DNA of 64,000 nt from Macrostomum lignano (GCA_002269645.1 NIVC01003197.1:48433-112432), one strand, 5' to 3'; numbered from the stretch's first letter, positions 20,383-63,838 are shown. Numbers and translations are program-made. Notes: generated by a model not told the origin, from the sequence alone.

Positions 20383-23300
20383 ATGAACAGCCGCCTCTTC
20401 ACTCACGCGCCCCCGGCTCACCTGATCTGCCGCGTCTGCCGCGGAGTTTATCGGGAGCCACGGGTCAACCAGTGCGGCCACACCCTGTGCAGCGGTTGCT
20501 ACACCCGCTTGCAGTTCGATCCCGCTGACCCGCAGCCATCTGTCTGCCCGCAGTGCGGCAGCGGCCTCGTGCCCGAGTCCTCCGTGCCGAACAGGTGCGG
20601 GCTTGGGACTTGAGTTTGTGTCAGATGGATTTCAGTTTGTGTCAGATGGATTTCAGTTTGTGTCAGATAGATTTCAGTTTGTGTCAGATGGATTTCAGTT
20701 TGTGTCAGATAGATTGTAGTTTGTCAGATAGATTGTAGTTTGTGTCAGATAGATTGTTGTTTGTGTCAGATAGATTGTAGTTTGTGTCATAGATTGAAGT
20801 TTGTGTCAGACAGATTGTAGTTTGTCAGATAGATTGTAGTTTGTGTCAGATAGATTGTAGTTTGTGTCAGATAGGTTGTAGTTTGTCAGATAGATTGTAG
20901 TTTGTGTCAGATAGATTGTAGTTTGTGTCATAGATTGAAGTTTGTGTCAGACAGATTGCAGTTTGTCAGATAGATTGTAGTTTGTGTCAGATGGATTTCA
21001 GTTTGTGTCAGATAGATTTCAGTTTGTGTCAGATAGATTGTAGTTTATGTCAGATAGATTGTAGTTTGTGTCAGATAGATTGTAGTTTCTGTCAGGCAAA
21101 TGGTAGTTTGTGTCTGTCAGGCAAATTGTGTCTGTCTGTAGTTTCTGTCAGGCAAATGGTAGTTTGTGTCAGATAGATTGTAGTTTGTGTCAGGCAAATA
21201 GTAGTTTGTGTCAGATAGATTGTAGTTTGTGTCAGGCAAATAGTAGTTTGTGTCAGATAGATTTCAGTTTGTGTCAGATAGATTGTAGTTTGTGTCAGAC
21301 AGATTGTAGTTTGTGTCAGACAGATTGTAGTTTGTGTCAGACAGATTGTAGTTTGTGTCAGACAGATTGTAGTTTGTGTCAGACAGATTGTAGTTTGTGT
21401 CAGACAGATTGTAGTTTGTGTCAGACAGATTGTAGTTTGTGTCAGATAGATTGTAGTTTGTGTCAGATGAATTTCAGTTTGTGTCAGATGGATTTTAGTT
21501 TGTCAGATAGATTGTAGTTTGTGTCAGACAGATTGTAGTTTGTGTCAGATAGATTGTAGTTTGTGTCAGGCAAATAGTAGTTTGTGTCAGATAGATTGTA
21601 GTTTCTGTCAGGCAAATGGTAGTTTGTGTCAGGCCAATAGTAGTTTGTGTCAGATAGATTTCAGTTTGTGTCAGACAGATTGTAGTTTCTGTCAGATAGA
21701 TTGTTGTTTGTGTCAGACAGATTGTAGTTTGTGTCAGATAGATTGTAGTTTGTGTCATGCAAATAGTATTTTCTGTCAGATAGATTGTTGTTTGTGTCAG
21801 ACAGATTGTAGTTTGTGTCAGACAGATTGTAGTTTGCGTCAGGCAAATAGTAGTTTCTGTCAGATTGCAGTTTGTGTCAGATAGATTGTAGTTTGTGTCA
21901 GACAGATTGTAGTTTGTGTCAGATAGATTGTAGTTTCTGTCAGGCAAATGGTAGTTTGTGTCAGATAGATTGTAGTTTGTGTCAGGCAAATAGTAGTTTG
22001 TGTCAGATAGATTGTAGTTTCTGTCAGGCAAATAGTAGTTTGTGTCAGATAGATTTCAGTTTGTGTCAGACAGATTTTAGTTTGTGTCAGCCAAATGCTA
22101 ATGTGTCAGGCAAATGGTAGTTTGTGTCAGGCAAATGCAAGTTTGTGTCAGGAAGATGCTAGTTTGTGTCATGCAGTTGGTGGTATCTGTCAGTCAGATT
22201 GTAGCTTGTACCAGGCATATTGTAGTTTCTACCAAGCAGATTGTAGTTGGTGTCAGGCAGATTGTAGTTTTGTGATAGACAGATTTTAGTTGGTGTCAGA
22301 CAGGTGGTAGTTGTGTCAGTCAGATTATAAATTTAGTTGCCAGGCAGATTGTAGTCGTGTCAGTTGGCCTGTAGTTTTTGTCACCCAGATCGCGGCTGTT
22401 TGCGTCAGAAAAATGTTGCATGTGTCAGAATTTTGATCAAGTATTAGCTAAACTATCGTCATGCATCCTTGGGTTTGTGCCAAACATGAAAAATGGTTTG
22501 CCTGACAACACAATAAATGGAAAGTCATTTGCGCAGTCCCAATAGACCATTCTATAATTCATCTTTGACGCATTGGCAGAGACATCAGCGAGGAGGTGGA
22601 GGAGCTGACCGTGCACTGCATCTACCATTTCAAGCTGACGCCCAGCCAGCAGGCGCAGGCGCAGTTCCTGCCGACCAGCCTGGACCTGACTGCGGACCCC
22701 AATGGCTGCAATGCCGAGCTGTCGCTGCGTGAGTACAGCTTTGTGTAGCTAGCTTTTCTCGTGTCACGTGACAGTGGCCAATGTCACTGATTAGGGAGCT
22801 CATAAAATACTAGATTGCGGAAATAAATTTCAGACTACTAACAGTAGGTTAGTAGTGCTTAACTGTATCATAAATTAACAGTTCTAAACTAGATTTCCTC
22901 GCCTGTCCTTCCCAACCTCGGCAGTGGATCTGGAGCAGCACATATCCTCTTGCGAATTCCGTCCGGCGCCGTGTCCCTTCGACACCGTCAACTGCAGGGG
23001 CTGCAGCCATCGGGACCTGCAGCGGCACGCTCAGGATTGCATCTTCCGCTTTCTGGGTGAGTGCTTTCTGGATGGGTGGCTTTTAGAGGTCAGGGGCAGG
23101 CTGTCCCACACTAAGCCATAGACTATTCCACACCAACCATAAACTACCCCACACCAACCATAAACTATCCCACACCAACCAAAGACTATCCGACACCAAC
23201 CAAAGACTACTCCACACCCTCCCGACACTATCGATAACCTAACCATAGACTATCACAGAATTCGTTTTCACCTGTTTCCAGAGCTCGCTCCACGGGAAAT

Positions 23301-25803
23301 CTTGGACGGCCTGTCGGTCCGCCAGTCGGAGACCCTGGCCACCCTGGCCAGCCTGGAGCAGCAGCTGCGCTCCGTTGAGAGCCGCCTGACCAGCCAGCTG
23401 GACTGTCTTGATGCGGCGCTGGACTCCGCGGCGTCAGCAGTAGCTCAGACTGCGCCAGCCGCAGCGCCAACCGCAGCAGCGTCGGACGCGAAGCCCAGCC
23501 TGATGGCAGCGCCACCCGTGCCACCAGTAGCGGCGACGGCAGCCTCGGCCATATCGGCACCGTCCAGGGCTACGTCAAGAACGGCGTCGACAAGGTCGGC
23601 TGTTTCAGCGGTTGCGGCGGCGAATGCTGCCTCTGCCTCTACTGCTGCTGATGGATTCAACGTGCGCTCCAGGCGAAGCGTCGATGTCTTCGATTTCGGG
23701 GGCGGCGGCGGCGAAGTTGTCGAGGGCGGAGGAGCAGTGGCGGTGGCGGCGGCAGCAAGAGGCGCTCTCAGCCGGTCGCCTTCCATGCCAGTGGGAACGG
23801 CGCGGCTGAATGGCTTGCCAGCAGTGAGTGTCAGTTGACCGCCTTTTCCATGCGTTCAACTTCAGTCCCGATAAGAAAGATGAGCACAGCATTTACTGTT
23901 CTCAAATTGTGTTGGAATTTCTCTCCGCAGAATCCCCGCTCCTCCTACCTCACCTGCTTGGCGGACCTCACCTGGCACAGCAGCCGGGTCGTGTCTCTGC
24001 TGCTCATTCCGGAACAGTTCCGCCTGGTGTCGCTGGACTCCACCGGAGCCATCGTGGCGTGGAACATCCAGCAGCTGTGCTCCGGCCACGCCGGCAACGC
24101 CAGAGCTGTGGAGCGGCTGGGCGATGCGCAGTACTCAGACAGCTTCGTGTGCGCCTGCCGCCTGCCAGTGTACGTGTTCGTGGGCTGCAGAGACGGCAGC
24201 CTGCTGCAGCTGGCCCGCTTCGCCACCGACATCAAGCGGGTCAAGACGGAGCCTGGCGCCCACTCGGCCTGCATCACGGCCGTCGCCGCCAGCCCCGGCG
24301 GCCTCCTGTTCAGCGGCAGCCGCGGCGAGCTCAAGGCGAGCTGATTTTACCTTATTTATATATTCTGTTATTGCAGTTATTAGCATCAGACATCCCCTAC
24401 TAGCGAGTAGGAAGAAAAGAAACGATGTGAATTTCTTATAATCTGTGTTAAATGGTTACGCAATTATTGCAAAATAATATGACTTGCTTTACCAGTCAGT
24501 CACGTGACCAGCGGCTCTCTGCACACTGCTGCTATATATAGGAGCCGGTGTGCCAGTCAGTCACGTGACCAGCGGCTCTCTGCACACTGCTGCTATATAT
24601 AGGAGCCGGTGTGCCAGTCAGTCACGTGACCAGCGGCTCTCTGCACACTGCTGCTATATATAGGAGCCGGTGTGCCAGTCAGTCACGTGACCAGCGGCTC
24701 TCTAAAAGCCCCACCCCTCCTGCACAGGTGTGGAAGTCCAGCAACCTGTGCTACCTGCAGACCGTGGCCATCACGCCTCGCCAGTCGGTTCGCTGCTTGA
24801 CTTTCGACGCCTGCCGCGGCGCCCTGCTGTGCGCCTGCGAGACGGAGCTGCACCGGTTCCTGGTGCGCCAGCAGCCGCCTCAGCAGCCGCCGCTGCAACA
24901 GGACCTACCAGCCTGGCATCAGCGCTACCGCCACCAGCTGCTGACCGACATCACCTGCTTGACTGTCACTGAGGAACGAATTCTGGTTGGCACCGGCCAG
25001 CCCGGACAGTCGCTGTGGCTCTTCTGCGCTGTCTCTGGCCGCTTTCAGGTGGGTTTTGATTCCACACCTGCCCCACACCAACCCCACACCTGCCCCACAC
25101 CCACCCCACACCTGCCCCACACTAACCCCACACCAACCCCACACCTGCCCCGCACTAACCCCACACCTGCCCCACACCAGCCCCACACCTGCCCCACACT
25201 AACCCCACACCTGCCCCACACCAACGCCACACCTGCCCCACACTAACCCCACACCTGCCCCACACCTGCCCCACACCTGCCCCACACCAACCCCACACCT
25301 GCCCCACCCCACACTAATCCCACACCTGCCCCACACCAACCCCACACCTGCCACACACGTGCCCCACACCTGCCCCACACCTGCCCCACACCAACCCCAC
25401 ACCTGCCCCACACTAACTCCACACCTGCTTCACACTAACTCCACACCTGCCTCACACCTGCCCCACACTAATCCCACACCTATCCCACTCCAATCCACAA
25501 ACCGCACACCCACAGGCCTGCATAGCGGGCGGCGCCGGTCTCTGCTGCCTTTCCTGGGTGCCGGACAGCGCCTACGCCATCGCTGGCTGCCAGAACGGCT
25601 CGCTGCAAATCTGGCGCTTGCTGGACTCGCGCCATCGCAGCCTGGGCGGAGCCGAGTTACACAGCGACCCGGTGGAGGGCGCCGTGCTGCTCCAGCAGAC
25701 GGAACGGCACCGAGACAGTGTGACCTCAATCTCGCTGCTGCAGGACCTGCTGTTCACCGGTTCTGGCGACGGCTGGATGAAGGTGTTCCGCTTCCAGCCT
25801 TGA
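20383..25803 (+). CDS. TRAF7: TRAF7-like RING / TRAF zinc finger / coiled coil / WD40 E3 ligase, 7 exons, 682 aa
   Basis: Exons 20383-20594, 22580-22728, 22925-23056, 23282-23823, 23931-24335, 24728-25048, 25516-25803 (2049 nt, phases compatible; intron 5 is GC-AG). RING CRVC..CGHTLCSGC..CPQC; EEVEELTVHC and DPNGC resemble TRAF7; C-terminal WD40 HRDSVTSISLLQDLLFTGSGDGWMKVF. Confidence 0.8.
20612..22330. repeat. 21-bp minisatellite (TRAF7 intron 1)
   Basis: Unit TGTAGTTTGTGTCAGATAGAT and variants, degenerating rightwards. Confidence 0.92.
24492..24700. repeat. 61-bp tandem repeat x3.4 containing GTCACGTGAC and TATATATAG (TRAF7 intron 5)
   Basis: GTCACGTGAC at 24499, 24560, 24621 and 24682 (period 61). 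Confidence 0.9.
25062..25500. repeat. C/A-rich CCCCACACCTG-type minisatellite (TRAF7 intron 6)
   Basis: Repeated CCCCACACCTG / CCCCACACCAA units. Confidence 0.85.
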
Positions 25804-26320
25804 CGGGGCACAATTTTGTTACTGAGGAGTCCAAGTTTTGAATCCATGGCTGTTAGAAAAGAGTTTTCCTGTGCTCCTGTACTGAGTACTGAAGTACTTT
25901 TATATACCAACGCCTCCTCACAATACTGGTTGGTGCTGTTTACATTTTTTACATTTTTGCTTATAGATTTTTTAGGTTGCGTTTCACTGCTGTGCCTTTC
26001 GCTGTGCCTTGTTAATCAAGTCTTTATTCTTGTTTTAAATTGACGCTTTATACTACTGTTGATCTCACATATTAAATAAATTAGTAGCTAGTATTGGATT
26101 TTGATGTTAAAATTCTGCGTAAAATGTCGAATTTTTGTTTCTTTATTTGTCTTTGCACCGGAGTATGGATCTACAAAAGTTCATGGATAGGTCTTTGTCA
26201 AAGCTGTGTTTACTGTTTATCTCCTTTAAGTCTTTGTCTGCGATTAGTCTTAGTTTTAAAACAGCATATTCTTTTTAATTTTGGCTAAAAGCAGCATATG
26301 TCACTTTGCCTTTGTTATAG

Positions 26321-28188
26321 GCTGCGCCAGCCGCTGCCGCCGCCTTAATAGAAAGTACTCTTGAGGCGCCCGCAGCGGCTCAGGAGGCGCCAGCAGCGGC
26401 TCAGAAGGCGCCAGCAGCGGCTCAGGAGGCGCCAGCAGCGGCTCAGGAGGCGCCAGCAGCGGCTCAGGAGGCGCCAACAGCGGCTCAGGAGGCGCCAACA
26501 GCGGCTCAGGAGGCGCCAGCATCTGACGAGAAGCCAGCAGTAACTTCATATCCAACAGCTGCATCAAAAGCCGTCACCGATGCAGCATCGGGCACCCTGG
26601 TGATGCTGGACCTGGAGACCACCGGGATGGAGGGCCGGCAGCGCATCACGGAGCTCGCCATGCTGGCTGTGCACACCTTCAACCTGCTTGAGGCGGCTGA
26701 GGCGGCCGCTGTTTCCGCCAGCCCGGTTGCTAATGGCAACGGAGACGCTGCTGGCGTCGGCTCGCAGCCGCCGAGAGCGTCGCGGCTTCCCCGCGTGATG
26801 AACAGCCTGTGCCTGGTGTTCCACCCCATGCAGCCAGTCCACCCGGCCGCCGCCGACCTGACGCGCCTTGACAACGTGGCTCTCGAGCGGCAGAAAGAGT
26901 TCGACAGGAACGCCGCCGCTCTGATTGACGCCTTCCTGAGCCGGCTGGAGCCTCCCGTCGTGCTGATGGCGCACAATGGGCTGCAGTTCGACTTCCCGCT
27001 GCTCAGGAGCGAGCTGGATGCTGTGGGGGTCAGGTGAGGTCACGGCGCTTTTTGACAAGGCTTTGGCCTAGCCCACCAACATACTACCCTACTGAATAGC
27101 CCACCATACTACTCACTAATTAGCCCACCATGCTACTCACTAATTAGCCCACCATACTACTCACTAAATAGCCCATACTACTCACTAAATAGCCCACCAT
27201 ACTACTCACTAAATAGCCCACCATACTACTCACTAAATAGCCCACCATACTACTCACTAAATAGCCCACCATACTACTCACTAAATAGCCCACCATACTA
27301 CTCACTAAATAGCCCACCATACTACTCACTAAATAGCCCACCATACTACTCACTAAATAGCCCACCATACTACTCACTAAATAGCCCACCATACTACTCA
27401 CTAAATAGCCCACCATACTACTCACTAAATAGCCCACCATACTACTTACTAAATAGCCCACCATACTACTCACTAAATAGCCCACCATACTACTCACTAA
27501 ATAGCCCACCATACTACTCACTAATTAGCCCACCATACTACTCACTAAATAGCCCACCATACTACTTACTAAATAGCCCACCATACTACTCACTAAATAG
27601 CCCACCATACTACTCACTAAATAGCCCACCATACTACTCACTAATTAGCCCACCATACTACTCACTAAATAGCCCACCATACTACTTACTAAATAGCCCA
27701 CCATACTACTCACTAAATAGCCCACCATACTACTCACTAAATAGCCCACCATACTACTCACTAAATAGCCCACCATACTACTCACTAAATAACCGCAAAT
27801 ACCGCTTACAAAAGAATCCTATCACACTACTTGCTAAATGCAGTAGTCCAGTCTTATTGCTCACTAAAAAAGGCGGCATGCTACTCACAAAATCCGCAGC
27901 CTGCAGTCTCGTCCGCTGTGCTGCGACTCCCTTCCTCTGTTTCGCAAGCTGGAGCCGCCCGGCAGTCGCTGCGGCCTCACAGAGCTGCACTTCCGCCTGG
28001 CGGGCTGGCGGCCTGAGGACGCCCACTCTGCCATCGAGGACTGCGCCAGCCTACTGCGGGTGCTGAGCTGCCGCCTGCCCGCTTGTCTGGACTGGGTGCG
28101 GCACCAGGCCGTGCCGTTCGACTCGGTGGCTCCCAAATATGTTGCTAAGCGGAGGCTGCCGCTGCCCGATTTTCCTTACAAGCTGTGA
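26321..28188 (+). CDS. TREX-like DEDDh 3'-5' exonuclease, unit A (start codon not in this exon)
   Basis: Exons 26321-27033 and 27900-28188 (phase 2). Exo[24 protein letters not shown], ExoII AHNGLQFDFPLL, CCDSLPLFR, ExoIII AHSAIEDC. N-terminal (E/K)AP(A/T)AAQ x7 (21-bp repeat, 26363-26509). Frame open from the acceptor at 26320 with no ATG until 26603. Confidence 0.88.
27070..27790. repeat. 24-bp minisatellite (TREX-A intron)
   Basis: Unit AGCCCACCATACTACTCACTAAAT. Confidence 0.95.
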
Positions 28189-28224
28189 GGGGTGCTGGAG
28201 TTTTCTCAAATAGCTGGGATTATT

Positions 28225-28560
28225 TATCTGGATCCAAATCCTCAGTTGCTTGGCCAGCCTCCCAGATCCCCAGTTGCTTGGCCAGCCTCCCAGATCCCCA
28301 GTTTCTGGGCCAGCCTCCCAGATCCCCAGTTTCTGGGCCAGCCTCCCAGATCCCCAGTTTCTGGGCCAGCCTCCCAAATCCTCAGTTGCTGGGCCAGCCT
28401 CCCAGATCCTCAGTTGCTGGGCCAGCCTCCCAGATCCTCAGTTGCTGGGCCAGCCTCCCAGATCCTCAGTTGCTGGGCCAGTCTCCCAGATCCTCAGTTG
28501 CTGGACCAGCCTCCCAGATCCCCAGTTGCTGGGCCAGCCTCCCAGTTCCTCAGTTGCTAG
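28225..28560. repeat. 28/29-bp minisatellite immediately after TREX-A
   Basis: Unit CCCAGATCCTCAGTTGCTGGGCCAGCCT. Confidence 0.9.
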
Positions 28561-29209
28561 GCAGCCTCCCAGAGTGTCAGTTGCACTACCAGTCCCAGGT
28601 TTCTCACCCGAGTTCGTGTTAGGTCACAGACCCTTATCTGTTCTTTTTTATCCATTTTATCAGTAATGTACATATTACATTTTTACATTAAGAACACAAA
28701 ACTGACCTTGCTTTACCTAACAGATTGCTTTTTGAGTTGCATGCTAATGATGTTTTTTCTTATCTACCGCACTTTTGTGCTGTCAACTCTATTAATTTCT
28801 ATTATTATGTTTTTAATCTAAATCTGTATGAGGCACATAGTTTGTTAGTATTGCGCGATTTTTAATATTTGAGTAATCATTTTTAACAAACAAATTTTGC
28901 CTTCTTGGACTTTTGTGTTGTCATAATTTTCTATTAACTTTTAGCTACAAGCTTATTGCACTTTTGTGCAAAAATGATTTATTATAATACCATTTTACCT
29001 GCTACCTTCTTATCGAAGATTGCTTCTGATTGTTGTATAAAGAATTATGAATATTATCTTTACAGTGTACAGTGTAAATATGGATTAATTCAGTTTAAAT
29101 TATAGCTGTTTACTGATTACTACTAATAGATTTTTATGCATCTGACCCAGATGTATGAAGACAGTGAGCTTGTTCTTGTTTGTGTTTGAGTCAGCCTCTT
29201 TTTTATGAC

Positions 29210-29800
29210 GGGTGTGTGAGTCAGGCAAGAAGGGTGAGATAACGGGTGTGAGTCAGGCAGGAAGGGTGAGATACGGGTGTGAGTCAGGCAGGAAGGGTGA
29301 GATAACGGGTGTGAGTCAGGCAGGAAGGGTGAGATACGGGTGTGAGTCAGGCAGGAAGGGTGAGATAACGGGTGTGAGTCAGGCAGGAAGGGTGAGATAA
29401 CGGGTGTGAGTCAGGCAGGAAGGGTGAGATACGGGTGTGAGTCAGGCAGGAAGGGTGAGATAACGGGTGTGAGTCAGGCAGGAAGGGTGAGATAACGGGT
29501 GTGAGTCAGGCAGGAAGGGTGAGATACGGGTGTGAGTCAGGCAGGAAGGGTGAGATAACGGGTGTGAGTCAGGCAGGAAGGGTGAGATAACGGGTGTGAG
29601 TCAGGCAGGAAGGGTGAGATAACGGGTGTGAGTCAGGCAGGAAGGGTGAGATTTGAGAGTCAGGCAGGAAGGGTGAGATTTGAGAGTCAGGCAGGAAGGG
29701 TGAGATTTGAGAGTCAGGCAGGAAGGGTGAGATTTGAGAGTCAGGCAGGAAGGGTGAGATTTGAGAGTCAGGCAGGAAGGGTGAGATTTGAGAGTCAGGC
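29210..29800. repeat. 31/32-bp then 27-bp minisatellite before the TREX-B exon
   Basis: Unit GGGTGTGAGTCAGGCAGGAAGGGTGAGATAAC, changing to GAGAGTCAGGCAGGAAGGGTGAGATTT. Confidence 0.92.
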
Positions 29801-29815
29801 TCCCCACACCCGCAG

Positions 29816-32800
29816 CAGCGACAAGCGTGGCGCACCCTGGCCGTGCTGGACCTGGAGACCACCGGCCTCTACCAGCCGCGCGTCACCGAGCTGGCTCTGC
29901 TGACCGCCGACCGGGCCGACCTGCTGCGCCGCGGCGGCACCGACCGGCTGCCCAGGGCGCTGAACCGGCTCTGCCTGCTGTTCAACCCCGGCTGCGAGGT
30001 GACGCCCTCGGCCGCGAACATCACCGGCTTGCACGGCGCCTGCCTGCGGTCTCAGCCGGCTTTCGACTCTGCGTCCGTGCGGCTGCTTGGCGCCTTCGTG
30101 CGGCGGCTCAACCAGCCGGTGCTGATGGTGGCGCACAATGGGGCCAGGTTCGACTTCCCGCTGCTCCAGGCTGAGCTCAGGCTGGCCTCGGCTGCCGCCG
30201 CTGGCTGCCCCGCCACGGCTGACGCGGCAAATTGTCTCGGTAGCGTGCTGTGCTCCGACTCGCTGCCTGCGCTTCGGGAGCTGCAGCTGCGGCCGGGTGC
30301 GGATGCTCTGTGAGTCTGAGCTGTTGCTGTCTGTCTGTCAGTGTCTGTCTTCCTGCCTGCCTGCCTGCCTGCCTGTCTGTCTGTCTCTGTCTGTCTGTCT
30401 GTCTCTGTCTGTCTGTCTGTCTCTGTCTGTCTGTCTGTCTGTGTCTGTCTGTCTGTCTGTCTGTCTGTTTGCCTGTCTGCCTGCCTGTCTGTCTGTCTGT
30501 CTGTCTGTCTGTCGGTCTCCCGTATAAAACGAAACGGTCACAAAAAGGGGCTGTGACCGTTCCACTTGTTACCGTGGTCTGTAATGCTTGTGACCGTTTA
30601 TTGTGACCGTTCATGTTCATGATAATAAGGTAACATGATACCGTTCATAGTTACCATATATGTGACCGTTTGTTCAGGGTCACATGTTACTGATCAATGT
30701 TACCGTATTTTGTGACCGTTTGTTTAGGGTCACATGTTACCGATCAATGTTACCGTATTTTGTGACCGTTTGTTTAGGGTCACATGTTACCGATCAATGT
30801 TACCGTATTTTGTGACCGTTTGTTTAGGGTCACATGTTACCGTTCAATGTGACCGTATTTTGTGACCGTTTGTTTATGGTCACATGTTACCGTTCAATGT
30901 GACCGTATTTTGTGACCGTTTGTTTAGGGTCACATGTTACCGTTCAATGTGACCGTATTTTGTGACCGTTTTGCTTACGGTAACTATGTTACTGTTTACT
31001 GTTACCATATTTTGTGACCGTTTTGTGATCTTGTGTGTTTTTTCTGACTATCAACCAACAGTATTATAATGTGCAAATAAGTAACAGGAATACAAATCAG
31101 CAGTAATATATTAGATGTGAAGTAACCAGTAATTGCGGCAATTGAGCTTTATATACGCAAAGCGCGCTATTATTAAAATGCATTATTATATGGTACATAG
31201 CGATCGCAGAAGTGCGCCAAAAAGAAGTAGTTGAATTAGTGGGACATCGCAGAAGTGCGCCAAAAAGAACTAGTTGAATTAGTGGGACATCGCAGAAGTG
31301 CGCCAAAAAGAACTAGTTGAATTAGTGGGACATCGCAGAAGTGCGCCAAAAAGAACTAGTTGAATTAGTGGGACATCGCAGAAGTGCGCCAAAAAGAACT
31401 AGTTGAATTAGTGGGACATCGCAGAAGTGCGCGACCAAAAGTTAAGCAGTTTTAGAAACCCATTGTACTGCGACGTTTAGGTTTAGTTTAGCTTTGTTTA
31501 GTTTAGCACAATGATATGTTGCATACACAAATTTCTCCCTCCCACTCTCTCCATTTTCTTTAATTATTCCCGATAAGAACAGAAAAAGCCCAGTAAATAA
31601 TAAAATGCCCGAAATGGCTGCATTTCAGTCTGGTACACTTCGACTCATGGATTTGCAGATGGATGAGAGGCTGCAGCTTCGTCGTCATTGTGATCTCCGT
31701 TGTCGCCAACGTTGGCGTCCTCATCATCGGCATCGATGTCGATCGTCGCCACCTCATTTCCGCTGGGTGCCAATTTGAGCGATTTTTGTAGTTTTCGCGC
31801 AGTACAGAATCCAGTGCGCTTAAACACGCCGGCATACTTTCTCTCCGGAATTTGGTTGGGCAACTGCAGGCCTTCAATAAACGCCTTAATGGCGAATTTT
31901 TTTCTCTTTGACACTTCCGCCTTTGGTGGCGGACCAGTTTTTGTCGACCTACGTCCCGTGTAAGAGCAGGTCGTAAGCTCGTCGTCCGTGAAAATTGCTA
32001 GGTACAAGGTCCGAAGCAATTTATCTGCGTCGGTACTCCTGTAACCTCCCTTGACATAGGCGGACACGGCATACTTTATCTTTGCGTAGTCGGTGGCCGA
32101 CACGACGACGTCGGGACAGCGCGCTGTCAAGGACCTCGTCTCGGGCTCACGTTTCCGCTGATTCAATGACGACATTCGGATCTGAGCGCGCAGGTCCATG
32201 TCGTCCAGCAACGGAGCTGCAGACGAGGCGGCCGCAGAAGCGCCACCACCAGCAGTCGTACTGCTGCTGCTAATCGTGTCAGCAACGCAATCTACGTAGA
32301 TGGCGGTTGTGAAGTAGCTTCGCCGGTAGATGGCGGTTGTGAAGTAGCTTCGCCGGTAGATGGCGGTTGTGGAGTACCTTCGCTACCGATGTCGTCGTCT
32401 GGATGACGGCGCTTATTACCACGATTCGTCTGTGGATTTCCAATGGCGGCGCCCATTGCAGTCGTTCCAGATTGCAACCATTGTTGTCGCCTTTGAAATA
32501 GAAGCTGCACTGTCTTGCGTTCTCGAAATCGTTTCACTCTTAAACGATTCATAATGGCGCGGCGTTGCTGGTCTTCCATGATAGAGATTTTTGTTCTTAA
32601 TGATTCTTATCCTCTGCAAAAGTGGCAAACGTTCATGAGAAATTAGTCAGTTGCTTCGTGGGTTACCGTCACTTCTCCTTATATACTGATTTGAAAGAGA
32701 ACGTATCCCTGGGCATAGGTAATAAATTTGCTTCCCTATTCATAACTATCACTTGTCCATACCTGACTATATATTACTGGGTATCCATGTGACCTATTTC

Positions 32801-33256
32801 AGGAGAGGCTACTCTGTAAAATTGTAAAGTATAAATTCAGGCAACAATAACACGTGCGTCACGCCGCACTCAAATTAAGCAACATAGTAGCAGCCTATTA
32901 TGCAATGATGACGACAACAGTTGGTAGAAAGCGACAAGTAGTAAACTCCACAACAGAACAAAACGGTCACAAAATACGGTAACATTGATCGGTAACATGT
33001 GACCCTGAACAAAACGGTCACAAAATACGGTAACATTGATCGGTAACATGTGACCCTTAACAAAACGGTCACACAATACGGTAACATTGAACAGTAACCT
33101 TGTTACCCCGAACTAAACAGTCACAAATACGGTAAAAAATGGCAACTGGTGACCGTAACGGTAAAAAACACGGTAACAGCCCTCTTTTTGTGACCGTTTC
33201 GTTTTATACGGGTCTGTCTGTCTGTGTCTGTCTGTCTGTTTGCCTGTCTGCCTGCC

Positions 33257-33306
<50 letters not shown>

Positions 33307-33316
33307 CCTGCCTGCC

Positions 33317-33373
<57 letters not shown>

Positions 33374-33764
33374 CGATCTCTTAGTGTCTGTCTTTCTGCC
33401 TGTGCCTGTCTGTCTGTCTGCATGGTTAGTATCCGTCTGTCTCTGCTATTTTAATCATCCAACTTACACCGAGCGCACCAACCAATCTGCTTCCACCAGG
33501 TTCGCCGAGCCCCTAAAGCAAGGAAAGCCGCAGGTGAGGTTCAGCCTGCAGCAGCTGTACAGCCAGGCATTCAGCGGCGAGGAGCCGCCTGGTAGTCACA
33601 GCGGCCTCGGCGACTGCGAAGCCCTGCTGCGGCTGCTGCTGTTCCGCCTTCCCGACTGCCTGCCACTGCTGGAGGCCGCGGCGGCGCCCTTCGAGACCGT
33701 GGCGCCCGCCAAGCTGCATGTCGAGGCCGCAGCGGCCGCCGCTTCCTCTGCGGCTGCTAATTGA
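29816..33764 (+). CDS. TREX-like DEDDh 3'-5' exonuclease, unit B
   Basis: Exons 29816-30309 and 33500-33764 (phase 2, CT|G). Exo[24 protein letters not shown], Exo[30 protein letters not shown], Exo[11 protein letters not shown]. 5' end uncertain (possible 13-nt exon 29151-29163). Confidence 0.88.
30519..33212. mobile_element. 2.7-kb non-autonomous TIR DNA transposon (CCC ends, CMC/EnSpm-like) in the TREX-B intron
   Basis: 28-bp perfect TIR CCCGTATAAAACGAAACGGTCACAAAAA at both ends. Subterminal 50-bp tandem repeats (x6 left, inverted x2-3 right). Flanking TCT/TCT inside a (TCTG)n tract. Internal 43-bp tandem array at 31203-31431. Confidence 0.85.
31645..32579 (-). CDS. Transposon cargo ORF with BEN-domain-like region, one apparent frameshift (~311 aa if corrected)
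   Basis: ORF 32579-32292 ([22 protein letters not shown]...) overlaps ORF 32211-31645, whose frame is open back to ~32385; one missing C near 32295 joins them. [45 protein letters not shown] fits the BEN pattern LL..LFT.EEL...S.TG....K...IK..V (recognised by eye). Confidence 0.6.
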
Positions 33765-33807
33765 CGGCGGCCGGGGCTGAGACCGCGCCACTTCTAGTTG
33801 TTTGGCA

Positions 33808-33825
33808 GACAACAGACAGACAGAC

Positions 33826-33894
<69 letters not shown>

Positions 33895-34394
33895 CTAAGA
33901 CACTAAGACAGACAGACAGACAGACACTAAGACAGACAGACAGACAGACAGATAGACAGACAGACAGACACACAGACAGACAGACAGACAGACAGACAGC
34001 TTTAAATTCAGTCGGGCCCCGGCATCAGGGGCTTTCCGCAGCATCAGTTGCCCAGATTTTAATGTTCTATTTTTCCAAAACGTTTCTCTGCTTACTAGGC
34101 TTGTCTTATCTTGTGCATTTTATAACAAAAAATCATTGGATTAACTTCGGACTCGCAGCTTAAACCGCAATTGTTTACAGGTAATTTTATTTGTCTGAAA
34201 ATGCATTGTCAATTAAATCGAGGAAGTTGCTTGAATTTTACATTTTAATAATGATTGTATCCGGGTTGCAGTGAAATACAAGCCTTTGTGTGTCCTTGCT
34301 TAAAGACTGCAATTTTTGCCTTGTTCTCTTTTACTCGTTCTTCGATTCTACCAAGAATTCTCTGTTATTGTTACGTCTCTTTGACAGCTTTTTG

Positions 34395-34439
<45 letters not shown>

Positions 34440-34458
34440 TTCTGTCTATCTGTCATAG

Positions 34459-34498
<40 letters not shown>

Positions 34499-34519
34499 AT
34501 AGTCTGTCTGTCTGTCATA

Positions 34520-34551
<32 letters not shown>

Positions 34552-34637
34552 TTCTGTCTGTCTGTCTGTCATAGTCTGTCTATCTGTCATAGTGTCTGTC
34601 TGTCTGTCTGTCTGTCATAGTCTGTCTGTCTGTCATA

Positions 34638-34672
<35 letters not shown>

Positions 34673-34693
34673 ATAGTCTGTCTGTCTGTCATA

Positions 34694-34732
<39 letters not shown>

Positions 34733-34753
34733 ATAGTCTGTCTGTCTGTCATA

Positions 34754-34788
<35 letters not shown>

Positions 34789-34821
34789 ATAGTCTGTCTG
34801 TCTGTCTGTCTGTCTGTCATA

Positions 34822-34869
<48 letters not shown>

Positions 34870-35015
34870 TTCTGTCTATCTGTCATAGTGTCTGTCTGTC
34901 TGTCTATCTGTCATAGTGTCTGTCTGTCTGTCTATCTGTCATAGTGTCTCTCTGTCTGTCTGTGTCTCTGTCTGTCTGTCTGTCTATCTGTCTGTCTCTG
35001 TCTGTCTGTCTGATT
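33808..35015. repeat. (GACA)n and (TCTG)n microsatellite blocks between TREX-B and NSUN2
   Basis: (GACA)n at 33808-34000 and (TCTG)n at 34394-35015, in opposite orientation around a unique core. Confidence 0.9.
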
Positions 35016-38200: not shown

Positions 38201-41111
38201 GTGGGATTCTGGGATATCTGAGTGGGATTCTGGGATATCTGAGTGGGATTCTGGGATATCTGAGTGAGATTATGGGATATCTGAGTGAGATTATGGGATA
38301 TCTGAGTGAGATTATGGGATATCTGAGTGGGATTCTGGGATATCTGAGTGAGATTATGGGATATCTGAGTGGGATTCTGGGATATCTGAGTGGGATTCTG
38401 GGATATCTGAGTGAGATTATGGGATATCTGAGTGGGATTCTGGGATATCTGAGTGAGATTATGGGATATCTGAGTGAGATTATGGGATATCTGAGTGGGA
38501 TTCTGGGATATCTGAGTGGGATTCTGGGATATCTGAGTGAGATTATGGGATATCTGAGTGAGATTATGGGATATCTGAGTGAGATTATAGGATATCTGAG
38601 TGGGATTCTGGGATATCTGAGTGGGATTCTGGGATATCTGAGTGGGATTCTGGGATATCTGAGTGGGATTCTGGGATATCTGAGTGGGATTCTGGAATAT
38701 CTGAGTGAGATTATGGGATATCTGAGTGAGATTATGGGATATCTGAGTGAGATTATGGGATATCTGAGTGGGATTCTGGGATATCTGAGTGAGATTCTGG
38801 GATATCTGAGTGGGATTCTGGGATATCTGAGTGGGATTCTGGGATATCTGAGTGGGATTCTGGGATATCTGAGTGGGATTCTGGGATATCTGAGTGGGAT
38901 TCTGGAATATCTGAGTGAGATTATGGGATATCTGAGTGAGATTATGGGATATCTGAGTGAGATTATGGGATATCTGAGTGGGATTCTGGGATATCTGAGT
39001 GGGATTCTGGGATATCTGAGTGGGATTCTGGGATATCTGAGTGGGATTCTGGGATATCTGAGTGGGATTCTGGGATATCTGAGTGAGATTATGGGAAATC
39101 TGAGTGAGATTATGGGATATCTGAGTGAGATTATGGGATATCTGAGTGAGATTATGGGATATCTGAGTGAGATTATGGGATATCTGAGTGAGATTATGGG
39201 ATATCTGAGTGAGATTATGGGATATCTGAGTGGGATTCTGGGATATCTGAGTGGGATTCTGGGATATCTGAGTGGGATTCTGGGATATCTGAGTGGGATT
39301 CTGGGATATCTGAGTGAGATTATGGGATATCTGAGTGGGATTCTGGGATATCTGAGTGGGATTCTGGGATATCTGAGTGGGATTCTGGGATATCTGAGTG
39401 AGATTATGGGATATCTGAGTGGGATTCTGGGATAGTTGAGTGGGATTGCGAGATTAATTCAGGTACTAAGATAAATTACAATAGGTTAAGGTTCAAATTC
39501 TTGAAATTGGTTGCTATGTACAATCGCCAGGTGGACGTCAGGCCCTTGCTGCCGGGCTTCAAATCTCTCCCGGGGCTGTCCAGCTGGAAGGTGATGGGCG
39601 CTAACGGCACGCTGTTTGAGAAGTACTCGGATGTGCCTGTGGGCCGCGACCACGCCTACCTGCGCCCGTCGTTCTTTGACGAAGGCTACAAAGACCTGCC
39701 GATGGAGCGCTGCATGCGGGTGCTGCCCCACCTGCAGGACACCGGCGGCTTCTTCGTTGCCGCGCTGGAGAAGCGGCGCCACCTGCCCTGGATGAACCCC
39801 GCCAAGTGGGACGCGGCGGCGGCCACAGCGGCTGCTGCGGATGCCTGCGCTCAGGATGGAGGCGCAGTTCAAGCGGCCACTGGAGATGGTAAGCCGGCAC
39901 TGCCGCTTGCAGCTGTTTCAGGCTGGCTCACTTTGGTGCCTGGTATGCTCTGTGATGTTTTAGTTTTAGGTGTCAGGTGTTATTGCCTATTAATGGTAGT
40001 GTCATGAGGTACAGGTTGTCAGCAGTGTCTGGTAAAGTTGTCAGATGCAGGCTGTCTTAGGGTCAGTTGTGTCGGGTGTAGTCGTCAAAAGTGTCAGTCA
40101 AAGTTGTCAATACTGTCAGGAGCAGCTGTCAATACTGTCAGGTGCAGCTGTCAATACTGTCAGGTGCAGCTGTCAATACTGTCAGGTGCAGCTGTCAATA
40201 CTGTCAGGTGCAGCTGTCAATACTGTCAGGTGCAGCTGTCAATACTGTCAGGCGCAGCTGTCAATACTGTCAGGTGCAGCTGTCAGCAGTGAGGCGCATC
40301 GGATCATTTCCCAAACATTCCCAGCCGCTCCAGCCGGTGATGCAGCAGCCGCAGACTCATCGGGGCGGCCGCAGTCGCCGAAGTCCAAGCGGCGCCGCTT
40401 CAACGAGGATCCGTTCCTGTTCATGGGCCCCGAGCACCCGGTGTGGCGCGGCATCTCCGAGACCTTCGGCATCGACAGCGGCCGGTTCCCCTGCGGCAAC
40501 GTGCTGTACCGCTGCGAGACCTCCAAGAAGCGGCACCTGTACCTGGTGAACGACTGCGCCAGGCGGCTGGTGCAGGGCAACCCGGAGCTCAAGACCGTCA
40601 ACATGGGCATCAAGATCTTCTCTGTGTGCGACGACGCCGAGTACAAAGGCTACAGGCCGCTGCAGGAGGGCCTGAGCCTGCTGGAGCCCTTCATCACCCT
40701 GCGCCGCATCCGGGTGCCCCGCTGCGATCTGCTGGTGCTGCTTGAGCACGAGCTGCCGTTCTCCGACCGGTTCACCGAGGCCACCAGGACGGCCTGGCGG
40801 CCCTGACTCTCGGCCCGGTCGTCATCGACTATCGGCGAGACGGCGAGGACGCCCAACAGCTGCCGGACGTGGACCTCTGCCTGGCCGGCTGGCGTGGCCG
40901 CACCACCCTGCGGGCGTACATGAACCGGCACGAGCGGCTGCACCTCACCCGCATGTGCGGAGTTGAAGATCTGGTTGAAATCCGCGGCAAAACTGCTGGC
41001 CAGGGCGACGGCGAGGGCGACGACGAGGACGGCCCGTCCGATGACGAGGAGGCTGTGGAGCCTCCGGCTGCGGCAGCGGCGGCCGATGGCAACGACGGGG
41101 AGGCGGAGTGA
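35215..41111 (+). CDS. NSUN2: RNA cytosine-C5 methyltransferase NSUN2/Trm4, 5 exons, one apparent 1-nt frameshift near 40797
   Basis: Exons 35215-35500, 35980-36258, 37057-37460, 39531-39888, 40325-41111. Motifs [65 protein letters not shown]. The C-terminal [20 protein letters not shown] lies in a shifted frame. Confidence 0.93.
35706..35906 (-). mobile_element. tRNA-derived CORE-like SINE, internally deleted copy (NSUN2 intron 1)
   Basis: Reverse complement matches the 62315 copy: B box GGTTCGATTCTC, GTGTCCTCGAGCAAGACACTTAAC, CTGTAAAATGG, 3' GCAATAGCTGCGGCTGAGCTGTCGGTTGCACATCTG. Confidence 0.85.
36300..37040. repeat. ~24-26-bp minisatellite (NSUN2 intron 2)
   Basis: Unit GTGTCTGACACAAGTCTCAGTGCATA and variants. 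Confidence 0.9.
37555..39445. repeat. 21-bp two-variant minisatellite, about 90 copies (NSUN2 intron 3)
   Basis: Units GGGATATCTGAGTGGGATTCT and GGGATATCTGAGTGAGATTAT interleaved. Confidence 0.96.
40095..40290. repeat. 22-bp minisatellite (NSUN2 intron 4)
   Basis: Unit CTGTCAATACTGTCAGGTGCAG. Confidence 0.9.
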
Positions 41112-41342
41112 CTCGGGACTCGTATACGAAATTTTAAACAAAATACTGCTAAGCCAATGCCTTGTGGTTCATCTCTATTTTGGCGAATTGCATTTTTTTA
41201 TTCAAAATTAAACATCATAATTATCAGCGTGAGCTGCTGAGTTTGGGTGACTCCGTGACTATGAAATCTGCACTGCAGTCTCATTGCCTTCTTCTGTCTG
41301 TGCCTTCTAAGACTGTGAGCACCTGGCTGGACACCTGCTTTA

Positions 41343-41712
41343 CACCTGAGCTATTCAGCCAGTCACCTGAGCTATTCAGCCAGTCACCTGAGCTATTCAG
41401 CCAGTCACCTGAGCTATTCAGCCACACACCTGAGCTATTCAGCCATTCACCTGAGCTATTCAGCCAGACACCTGAGCTATTCAGCCAGTCACCTGAGCTA
41501 TTCAGCCACACACCTGAGCTATTCAGCCACACACCTGAGCTATTCAGCCATTCACCTGAGCTATTCAGCCAGTCACCTGAGCTATTCAGCCAGTCACCTG
41601 AGCTATTCAGCCAGTCACCTGAGCTATTCAGCCAGTCACCTGAGCTATTCAGCCAAACACCTGAGCTATTCAGCCAGTCACCTGAGCTATTCAGCCAGTC
41701 ACCTGAGCTATC
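41343..41712. repeat. 21-bp minisatellite downstream of NSUN2
   Basis: Unit CACCTGAGCTATTCAGCCAGT, about 17 copies. Confidence 0.92.
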
Positions 41713-43086
41713 GCATGGCATTCAAATGCAGTTAAAATCACAGCAAACCGTCGCTTCCGTGATGCCAAGATTATTTCCGCCTGTTGAACTTGCAGCAGGC
41801 TCGCTCAGTCGGTTTAGCTTCGGTCACGCGAATTCCTTTTTTCAAGCTCGGAGCGAAATTGAACCAGTAAGAGGTTGCTACGTCCAAGTGGCACTCGGAA
41901 ACCTCGGAACTTTTCTCCGCAATTTTAACTGCCAGTCGATATTGACTTGAGCCACTTTTATTTATTGCGAACACTACCTCGCATTTTTGCTAGAAAAAAT
42001 TATAATCAAGATTTGACGTCATTTTGCTCCATAGAAGGAAAAGTCCCACTGCAGGGTGCAATTATTATTTTCAGCAATGGAAAATATTTGACCGCCTGGC
42101 TTCACCCGATCAGAGAAGTCCAGGCGTTACGCTTAGCACAGGAACAATGCCCTCCCCCCCTTGAAATTTAAGAGGCTCGCTTGCTTATCGATACTCTCCA
42201 TATCGGCTCCCCTGACTGCACGTCCGCTTGCTGCATGCAGCTGTATCAGGCCCAGGCTGGACCAACACTGCCCCCCCCCCCCCAGCTCGTCAGGCTCGGC
42301 CAAGTCAAGTGTGAGCAACTGCAGGCAGACTGCAAGGGGACCACGGGAAGAGAATTTGGTTTGGAATTGTAAAGCAGGGCGAGAATACAATGCGTAAAAT
42401 CCGCTGTAAAAATGAGTAGAGTGGGGTCGGGAGAGCAGGCAGGAGCTGGGGGTTGGCGGGGGGCTCGCGAGCCGCAATTGGCTGCTGGCTCTGCACTCCG
42501 ACAGGTTTCCAAGGGGCGACGGGAGGAAGGGGGGATCCGGGCTGCAAGGGTAAAAAAATGCCGAGTCGGTGGGCTGCTGGGTGCGGACCCATTGTTCCAC
42601 ACGACTCTGCTACTTTGAGATCTGCGCTTGCCCGATCGGCTCCGTCAACTACTGATGAAGCTTTCTGCAGCTTCCAGCTTAATTTCTTGCGCTTGAACTC
42701 TTCCAGGTAACTGAGGGTGTCTGCTTCAGTACAGGTGAGTCTGGGATGGGGATTCGTTGCTAGCAGGAGCAAGGATTTCTGGTTAGTTGCTAGAGAACAT
42801 TTAGCAAAACATTTTTTCTAGGAATCAAAATGGGAATTCAAATTAATTATTTTTACTGATTTTTCCTCCTAGTGGTCAGGTGTGTTAACCAGAGCAGGTA
42901 GGTAGCAGCAATACCTGCTGAAGTACTTTACCGCTCAATATAAAATCCCTTGGGCAGAAAACGGTAAAAAAACCTGCGCACGTGTGCAGCTGCATTTTCT
43001 GCTCATCCCTGACCTCTCGCTCCTTGCCTTGCATGCAGCCGAATCGCCTTCAGCACCTGCAGCCCTACTGAGATTGAGGCCGCGCC

Positions 43087-63838
<20,752 letters not shown>

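Follow-up and report, generated by a model that had tools for sequence, protein, structure and literature searches.

The Macrostomum lignano locus considered here lies in a 64,000-nucleotide (nt) stretch of DNA (the window), which matches record NIVC01003197.1 of assembly Mlig_3_7 with 100% identity (record coordinate = window position + 48,432). Two units related to the exonucleases TREX1 and TREX2 follow one another on its plus strand, unit A at 26321-28188 and unit B at 29816-33764; all positions are those of the window. An earlier interpretation made from the DNA alone (the sequence-only reading) had proposed as its headline that a 13-nt microexon fuses the two units in frame into one two-domain enzyme, and had kept two separate tandem genes as a fallback. 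It is the fallback that is favoured here, and the headline is set aside: the annotation splits A from B, the AUG of the trans-spliced leader would account for their starts, and a microexon of this kind is expected by chance. A and B are most likely an ordinary operon-like pair of TREX paralogs.

Two TREX-like units and their gene models

Both units span the TREX1/TREX2 catalytic domain from end to end. In phmmer searches against PDB, the top 29-30 matches of each unit were all TREX1 or TREX2 chains, aligned over chain residues ~9-235 with E values of 1e-22 to 1e-29 (best ~1e-29), and the units came out barely over the cutoff of Pfam RNase_T. The catalytic residues are present in both. In particular, the Exo I D-x-E (DLETTG; amino acids (aa) 97-102 of A and 12-17 of B) aligns with TREX1 D18/E20, the Exo II Asp lies in HNGLQFDF (A) and HNGARFDF (B) opposite TREX1 HNGDRYDF, and the Exo III H-x4-D of the 'h' subtype is found in HSAIED (A) and HSGLGD (B) opposite TREX1 HTAEGD. 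TREX1 and TREX2 are obligate dimers, and both units carry an Arg at the TREX1 R114 dimer-interface position (FLSRLE in A, FVRRLN in B; position counted from the alignments). Two intact exonuclease units are far beyond chance, and the motifs and alignments bear out what the sequence-only reading had said of them, namely that they are two complete DEDDh units with a P-R motif. A and B are TREX1/TREX2-like DEDDh 3'-5' exonucleases with an activity predicted from sequence; they already have entries, as unnamed proteins, in both GenBank and UniProt and represent new, uncharacterised members of a known family.

Like mammalian TREX1 and TREX2 (PDB 7tqp, 9l86, 2ioc, 1y97), A and B combine the five DEDDh residues and a full catalytic domain with a P-R motif before a conserved strand, and the predicted fold of their domains matches TREX1 chains with a template modelling (TM) score of ~0.89 in Foldseek. 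However, they share only 33-37% identity with the mammalian proteins, and 36% with each other. The C-terminal endoplasmic reticulum anchor typical of TREX1 is absent, as had been observed earlier: no hydrophobic tail of transmembrane length was found in the units. Unlike TREX1/TREX2, A has a longer insert after the first helix and an 85-aa low-complexity N-terminal extension, rich in Ala, Pro and Gln, which is encoded by a 21-nt repeat (26363-26521; 7.6 copies, heptapeptide EAPAAAQ). A further difference from mammalian TREX1 and TREX2 is that A and B stand next to one another in one transcriptional unit.

The exons listed in Table 1, when assembled and translated, give 333 codons for A and 252 codons for B. 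GenBank holds a model of A at this locus (BOX15_Mlig001461g1, PAA52695.1, 333 aa, 5'-partial), whose coding sequence (CDS) covers exactly 26321-28188 and whose product is identical to the assembled protein. A paralogous locus, on the reverse strand of NIVC01000741.1 (within 39,400-45,400), is ~92% identical to the window in non-coding DNA and carries A (BOX15_Mlig015697g1) and B (BOX15_Mlig015697g3) as two genes of one transcriptional unit. The B model of this locus (251 aa, 5'-partial) has its first codon directly after the second AG of a cagcag acceptor, which corresponds to the one chosen for B in the sequence-only reading, and it validates the donor at 30309 in the window. The two A copies differ in the number and sequence of the 21-nt repeats (models of 333 and 352 aa). 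The two B copies are 98.8% identical. Of their 252 codons, no more than 9 are different, 5 by synonymous and 4 by non-synonymous changes, which is far below the divergence of the flanking non-coding DNA, and the variants of the window copy include N99 (H in the paralog) and P versus S at GCPATAD.

The Mlig_3_7 annotation was built from StringTie/TACO transcriptional units, in which TBONE cuts genes at mapped spliced leader (SL) and poly(A) reads (PMC5730564). The g1 and g3 models of Mlig015697 therefore mark A and B as two genes of one transcriptional unit. Indirectly, the annotation speaks for a B transcript that has a 5' end of its own and for an A transcript that ends before B; both are among the three observations that, according to the sequence-only reading, would refute a fusion. 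In the main text and supplements of the M. lignano papers searched, there was no mention of Mlig015697, Mlig001461 or TREX, and the protein collection searched held no transcript-derived entries for the A or B genes.

Table 1. Exons, introns, motifs and spacer elements of the two TREX-like units (window positions; a slash marks a splice boundary, here and in the text)
Feature	Position	Strand	Description
A exon 1	26321-27033	+	Exo I, LPRV, Exo II; 21-nt coding repeat; donor CAG/GTGAGG
A intron	27034-27899	+	borders CAG/GTGAGG and ccgcag/CCT; mostly 24-nt satellite at 27076-27791, ~30 copies
A exon 2	27900-28188	+	Exo III; stop TGA at 28186-28188
A motifs	DLETTG 26609-26626; LPRV 26786-26797; HNGLQFDF 26972-26995; HSAIED 28024-28041	+	
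A-B spacer	28189-29815	+	1627 nt; 28-nt array, unique AT-rich DNA, 32-nt array
28-nt array	28234-28584		12.6 copies; 0.35 kb here versus ~1.7 kb at the paralogous locus
Unique AT-rich spacer part	28585-29213		30% GC
Candidate 13-nt microexon	29151-29163	+	cccag/ATGTATGAAGACA/gtgagc; phase 2 to phase 0
32-nt array	29214-29787		19 copies; 33 GTGAG donor-like copies
B exon 1	29816-30309	+	Exo I, LPRA, Exo II; donor CT/GTGAGT (GCTCT/GTGAGT at 30309)
B intron	30310-33499	+	borders CT/GTGAGT and caccag/G; (CTGT)n tracts flanking a transposon
B exon 2	33500-33764	+	Exo III; stop TGA at 33762-33764
B motifs	DLETTG 29849-29866; LPRA 29948-29959; HNGARFDF 30134-30157; HSGLGD 33597-33614	+	

The only intron of B contains a 2.7-kb transposon (30519-33212) that is not found at the paralogous locus. 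The element is bounded by 32-nt terminal inverted repeats (30519-30550 and 33181-33212, 97%), has subterminal repeats of ~50 nt in inverted orientation and holds a 43-nt array of five copies (31203-31432). On its minus strand are two open reading frames (ORFs), 31645-32211 (188 aa) and 32292-32579 (95 aa); the former gives a weak BEN-domain match (E 0.005), which is below the Pfam cutoff. Tracts of (CTGT)n/(CAGA)n are seen among the arrays at 30327-30518, 33212-33420, 33806-33999 and 34395-35012. In general, introns and spacers at this locus are full of tandem arrays (24-nt in 30, 28-nt in 12.6 and 32-nt in 19 copies).

The other GenBank models at this locus are a cold-shock-domain gene, a RING/WD40 gene (CDS 20383-25803) and an NSUN2-like methyltransferase gene that starts at 35215. 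A search with the N-terminal exon of NSUN2 for the transcriptional-unit names of the neighbours returned no matches. Within the span of the RING/WD40 gene are a perfect 61-nt repeat of 3.5 copies (24492-24703) and an 11-nt array of 36 copies (25062-25468). At 62316-62386, on the plus strand, an Rfam tRNA match lies slightly over the gathering score (32.5 versus 29 bits, E 0.0066), and ARAGORN reported no tRNA in the window.

Start codons, the spliced leader and the spacer

Each unit opens in phase 0, directly behind a splice acceptor. A is preceded by an in-frame TAG (26318-26320), the AG of which is that of the acceptor (ttgttatag/GCT), and B by a NAGNAG acceptor (ccgcag/CAG/CGA, 29810-29818) that can be cut after 29815 or after 29818. 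Upstream of B, the frame stays open for eight codons and contains no ATG. The first in-frame Met is found two residues before the D-x-E motif in A and after this motif in B. The neighbouring CDSs all begin with a genomic ATG, so A is an exception that needs an explanation.

Such an explanation is offered by the spliced leader of M. lignano. The leader, CGGTCTCTTACTGCGAAGACTCAATTTATTGCATG, is 35 nt long and ends in ...TTGCATG (PMC8629364), and the same 3' end is given in PMC5173321. Joined to 26321, it yields MAAPAAAAALIES, which is in frame with A; joined to 29816 or 29819, it yields MQRQAWR... or MRQAWR..., both in frame with B. Since the terminal AUG of the leader is in frame with both units, the lack of ATGs of their own can be explained without a fusion. 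In flatworms, initiation at the 3'-terminal AUG of the spliced leader has been documented (Cheng et al. 2006, J Biol Chem 281:733, in the summary given by PMC9851317). Moreover, the exact site at which the leader AUG would land is taken by a genomic ATG in the paralogous A: the sequence of this copy is ttgttcATGGCT versus ttgttatag/GCT in the window (26312-26323), and it reads ttgttcATGGCTGCG opposite ttgttatag/GCTGCG. A genomic start in one copy of A and a leader-donated start in the other would thus lead to the same N-terminus.

The spacer between the units fits an operon as well. In M. lignano, operons have been defined by a repeat-adjusted intergenic distance of less than 1 kb (PMC8629364). 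Tandem repeats make up 925 of the 1627 nt between A and B, and the remaining distance therefore falls within this limit. In the unique part of the spacer, TATAAA at 29036 is the only hexamer that resembles a poly(A) signal or a TATA box; upstream of A, an AATAAA (26075) follows the stop codon of the RING/WD40 gene, 245 nt before the A acceptor. A and B thus resemble flatworm SL-AUG mRNAs and the SL operons of M. lignano (PMC8629364, PMC5730564) in that both start at phase-0 acceptors and neither has a usable genomic ATG; they likewise share an orientation, a spacer of less than 1 kb after repeat adjustment and, at the paralogous locus, a transcriptional-unit identifier. They differ from SL-AUG genes in that the paralogous A copy has a genomic ATG instead.

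According to the mechanism proposed here, A and B would be transcribed in one operon-like unit that is resolved into two mRNAs. The A mRNA would be polyadenylated somewhere in the AT-rich spacer, which would hold the 3' untranslated region (UTR) and the poly(A) site of A together with the outron of B. The 35-nt leader would be trans-spliced at 26320/26321 for A and at either 29815/29816 or 29818/29819 for B, and its 3'-terminal AUG would serve as the initiator, giving MAAPAAAA... (334 aa) and M(Q)RQAWR... (252-253 aa). Each protein would comprise a complete catalytic domain and presumably dimerise like TREX1/2, with another copy of itself or possibly, in an A-B heterodimer, with the other unit.

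The candidate microexon and two-domain TREX proteins

The stop codon of A lies inside a donor-like context, AAGCT/GTGAGG (CT/GTGAGG at 28183-28190), and the first exon of B ends in the same CT/GTGAG arrangement; both details, which the sequence-only reading had pointed out, were reproduced, and its phases, its junctions and the flatworm origin that it assumed also proved right. The context of the A stop is mildly unusual, being found, by a rough estimate, at ~6% of stop codons. Joined directly, 28184 and 29816 are out of frame, and a stop follows after 28 codons. The 13-nt segment turns phase 2 into phase 0 as had been claimed: the join 28184 > 29151-29163 > 29816 produces a stop-free frame of 589 aa (about 590 had been predicted) with the junction PYKLCMKTQRQAWR. 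The second ATG of the segment (29155-29157) is in frame with B (MKT/QRQ...). Apart from the donor of the segment, ACA/gtgagc at 29163, the unique AT-rich part of the spacer has no GT[AG]AG.

In the real spacer, an arbitrary AG combined with a GT[AG]AG donor permits 125 cassette exons that restore the frame without a stop. The ease with which a good exon of this kind arises was gauged from dinucleotide-preserving shuffles judged by the same splice-site criteria as the real spacer. At least one frame-restoring exon of equal quality was present in 73% of the shuffles of the whole spacer and in 44% of those of its unique part. The composition of the segment is 31% G+C (GC), like that of the spacer (30%) and unlike that of the exons (67-71%); in the fusion frame, 3 of its 4 informative codons end in A or T, versus a pooled third-position GC content of 78% (P ~0.035). 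A frame-restoring microexon is expected by chance. Its perfect conservation at the two loci was considered as a sign of function and rejected, because the 250 nt around it are no less conserved and the comparison is between just two sequences. In addition, a perfect CAG/GTGAGG occurs at 33534 inside the second exon of B (33531-33539, codons P-Q-V-R) and must remain unspliced for an in-frame Exo III; GTGAGG by itself therefore does not define a donor here.

A fused protein is already found in the databases. UniRef100_A0A1I8H242 (551 aa, three identical entries), from the automatic annotation of an older assembly, has the same junction, PYKLCMKTQRQAW (...PYKLCMKTQRQ...). The sister models of this annotation join A and B by three other junctions with broken frames: one makes an out-of-frame direct join, adds a frame-fixing mini-intron and then runs into NSUN2, another reads through pieces of the 28-nt array, and a third has scrambled frames. 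As their internal inconsistency suggests, the older models are probably MAKER-type automatic predictions. Such heterogeneous joins point to a gene finder that merges adjacent ORFs and not to transcript evidence. A deterministic gene finder would reach the same best frame-fixing path as the sequence-only reading. A0A1I8H242 was therefore rejected as independent support for a fusion, given that its sister models differ, break the frame and run into the next gene.

Two TREX domains in one chain do exist elsewhere. With B as the query, an exhaustive HMMER search of 1.84 billion representative proteins revealed them in ascidians, in a sea star and in a crab. The ascidian family (440-517 aa) includes Ciona intestinalis XP_009860559.1 and XP_018667031.2, Phallusia mammillata CAB3263212.1, Clavelina lepadiformis XP_076800659.1 and further ENA/JGI members; in these proteins, D-x-E and the His and Asp of Exo III are gone from the N-terminal domain, which is therefore a pseudo-enzyme, and the C-terminal domain is intact. 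Both domains are intact in Acanthaster planci XP_022101032.1 (494 aa) and Petrolisthes manimaculis KAK4291442.1 (841 aa), which keep their DEDDh residues in both domains, as do A and B. The linkers between the domains measure 23-26 aa, versus 27 aa in the hypothetical M. lignano fusion. However, these two-domain proteins are single ORFs in gene or cDNA models, whereas in M. lignano a stop codon and a further 1.6 kb lie between the domains, and the annotation assigns them to two genes; the likeness is one of architecture. No fused double-TREX proteins from other flatworms, where it had been suggested to look for them, were found in the protein searches, including the HMMER scan. The sequence-only reading had stated that a single-chain double TREX was not known. 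As regards the literature this stands, since tandem TREX proteins are not described in anything that our search turned up; as regards sequences it does not, given A0A1I8H242 and the ascidian, Acanthaster and Petrolisthes proteins. A structural model of the fusion, another of the checks suggested, came out compact: AlphaFold2 on the database fusion model gave a mean predicted local distance difference test (pLDDT) score of 83.6 and a predicted TM score (pTM) of 0.85, with low confidence only in the N-terminal repeat and in the 27-aa linker, so that a fusion is sterically plausible.

Separate genes, fusion and other readings

Taken together, the gene models, the leader AUG and the spacer make it probable that A and B are two separate tandem TREX-like genes, that they belong to one transcriptional unit processed by SL trans-splicing and that each uses the AUG of the leader. 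Several observations weigh against this conclusion. Each of the two acceptors is only a partial match to [T/C]TNCAG, the trans-splice motif given in the literature, and leader addition at 26321 and at 29816/29819, like the poly(A) site between A and B, is deduced from annotated CDS starts and gene names. The paralogous A model begins 18 nt within its ORF, where there is no acceptor, which means that 5'-partial ends are not always SL sites, and GenBank has no model for B at the window locus. The hexamer at the A stop is identical to that of the real intron donor of A and provides a good donor context. Among the 125 candidates, 29151-29163 alone combines a YAG acceptor with at least 7 pyrimidines in the 12 upstream positions, and it is the best candidate in the real spacer. 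Finally, the block 28960-29213, which includes TATAAA and the 13-nt segment, is 98.6-100% identical between the paralogous loci (its counterpart lies at 13870-14165 of the extracted paralogous sequence), versus ~92% for the preceding 400 nt. This conserved block of ~250 nt could equally be the end of a 3' UTR with its poly(A) region, a promoter, the result of gene conversion or, as two sequences were compared, a matter of chance.

Some of these points belong to the fusion itself, in which the CT/GTGAGG donor, the microexon and the B acceptor would be used in some or all transcripts to make a single chain of ~590 aa with two active TREX domains, an intramolecular pseudo-dimer that would carry the junction peptide DFPYKLCMKTQR. 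The frame arithmetic is exact and free of stops, no other candidate in the real spacer pairs a pyrimidine-rich tract and a YAG acceptor with a GT[AG]AG donor, and the stop of A overlaps a donor-like GTGAGG; the common transcriptional unit would supply a common pre-mRNA, an automatic model has the identical junction, natural two-domain proteins have linkers of much the same length, and the fused model folds compactly. Yet the transcript-based annotation splits A from B, and the other automatic models use three different frame-broken joins, one of which takes in NSUN2. Equally good microexons appear in 44-73% of shuffled spacers, the GC content and codons of this one are intergenic-like, and the neighbourhood is rich in donor-like GTGAG that goes unused (the 32-nt array has 33 copies, and B exon 2 contains CAG/GTGAGG). 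Moreover, a fusion leaves unexplained why B starts in phase 0 and in frame with the leader AUG, and fused proteins were not found in other flatworms. On balance, the fusion is unlikely. The same 13-nt segment could instead be the end of a short first exon of B, transcribed from a promoter of its own ~30 nt downstream of TATAAA (29036), with initiation at ATG 29155 (MKT/QRQAWR...) and 29164-29815 as the first intron. That ATG is in frame across 29163>29816, TATAAA lies 115 nt upstream, the donor at 29163 is unique in the AT-rich part, the surrounding block is unusually conserved, and the choice of this donor by gene finders would be accounted for. With such an exon, however, the paralogous B model would be complete and start with MKT, whereas it is 5'-partial from the downstream acceptor; three out-of-frame or upstream ATGs (~29081, 29136, 29151) precede 29155, both ATGs of the 13-nt segment are in weak context, and the composition is intergenic. 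This arrangement also appears improbable.

A different kind of alternative is that B in the window is a silenced or decaying duplicate, its expression blocked by the intronic transposon, and that only the paralogous locus makes B. GenBank has a B model there and none here, and the insertion is specific to the window copy. Nevertheless, the window copy retains an intact ORF, two intact splice sites and the full set of five catalytic residues, its few codon differences from the paralog stay far below the divergence of the flanking non-coding DNA, an intronic insertion need not stop splicing, and reads that map to both of two such similar copies can explain the missing model; decay of B is therefore highly improbable. 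The readings do not strictly exclude one another. There is a small chance that a fraction of the A-B pre-mRNA escapes polyadenylation and trans-splicing and is cis-spliced, by way of the donor at the A stop and the 13-nt microexon, to encode a regulated single-chain pseudo-heterodimer that has two active sites, beside the two monomer mRNAs.

Most likely a pair of tandem TREX-like genes served by a spliced leader, the locus is a clean case in which translation of the ORFs depends on the AUG of the leader, with a sister copy that has a genomic ATG at the same position. For the annotation of flatworm genomes, where genes of this kind end up as "partial" models or are run together by gene finders, it is a useful example. 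It is also a warning that frame-restoring microexons are easily found by eye or by software: the idea of a fusion is not new, and an artefactual-looking one is already in UniProt as automatic model A0A1I8H242. If a fused isoform were real, M. lignano would stand at an intermediate stage of the gene-fusion route behind the two-domain proteins of ascidians, sea star and crab, and alternative processing of an operon precursor would switch between two monomers and a covalent dimer. The two-domain TREX architecture itself appears to be undescribed, and it bears on how an obligate-dimer nuclease evolves asymmetric subunits.

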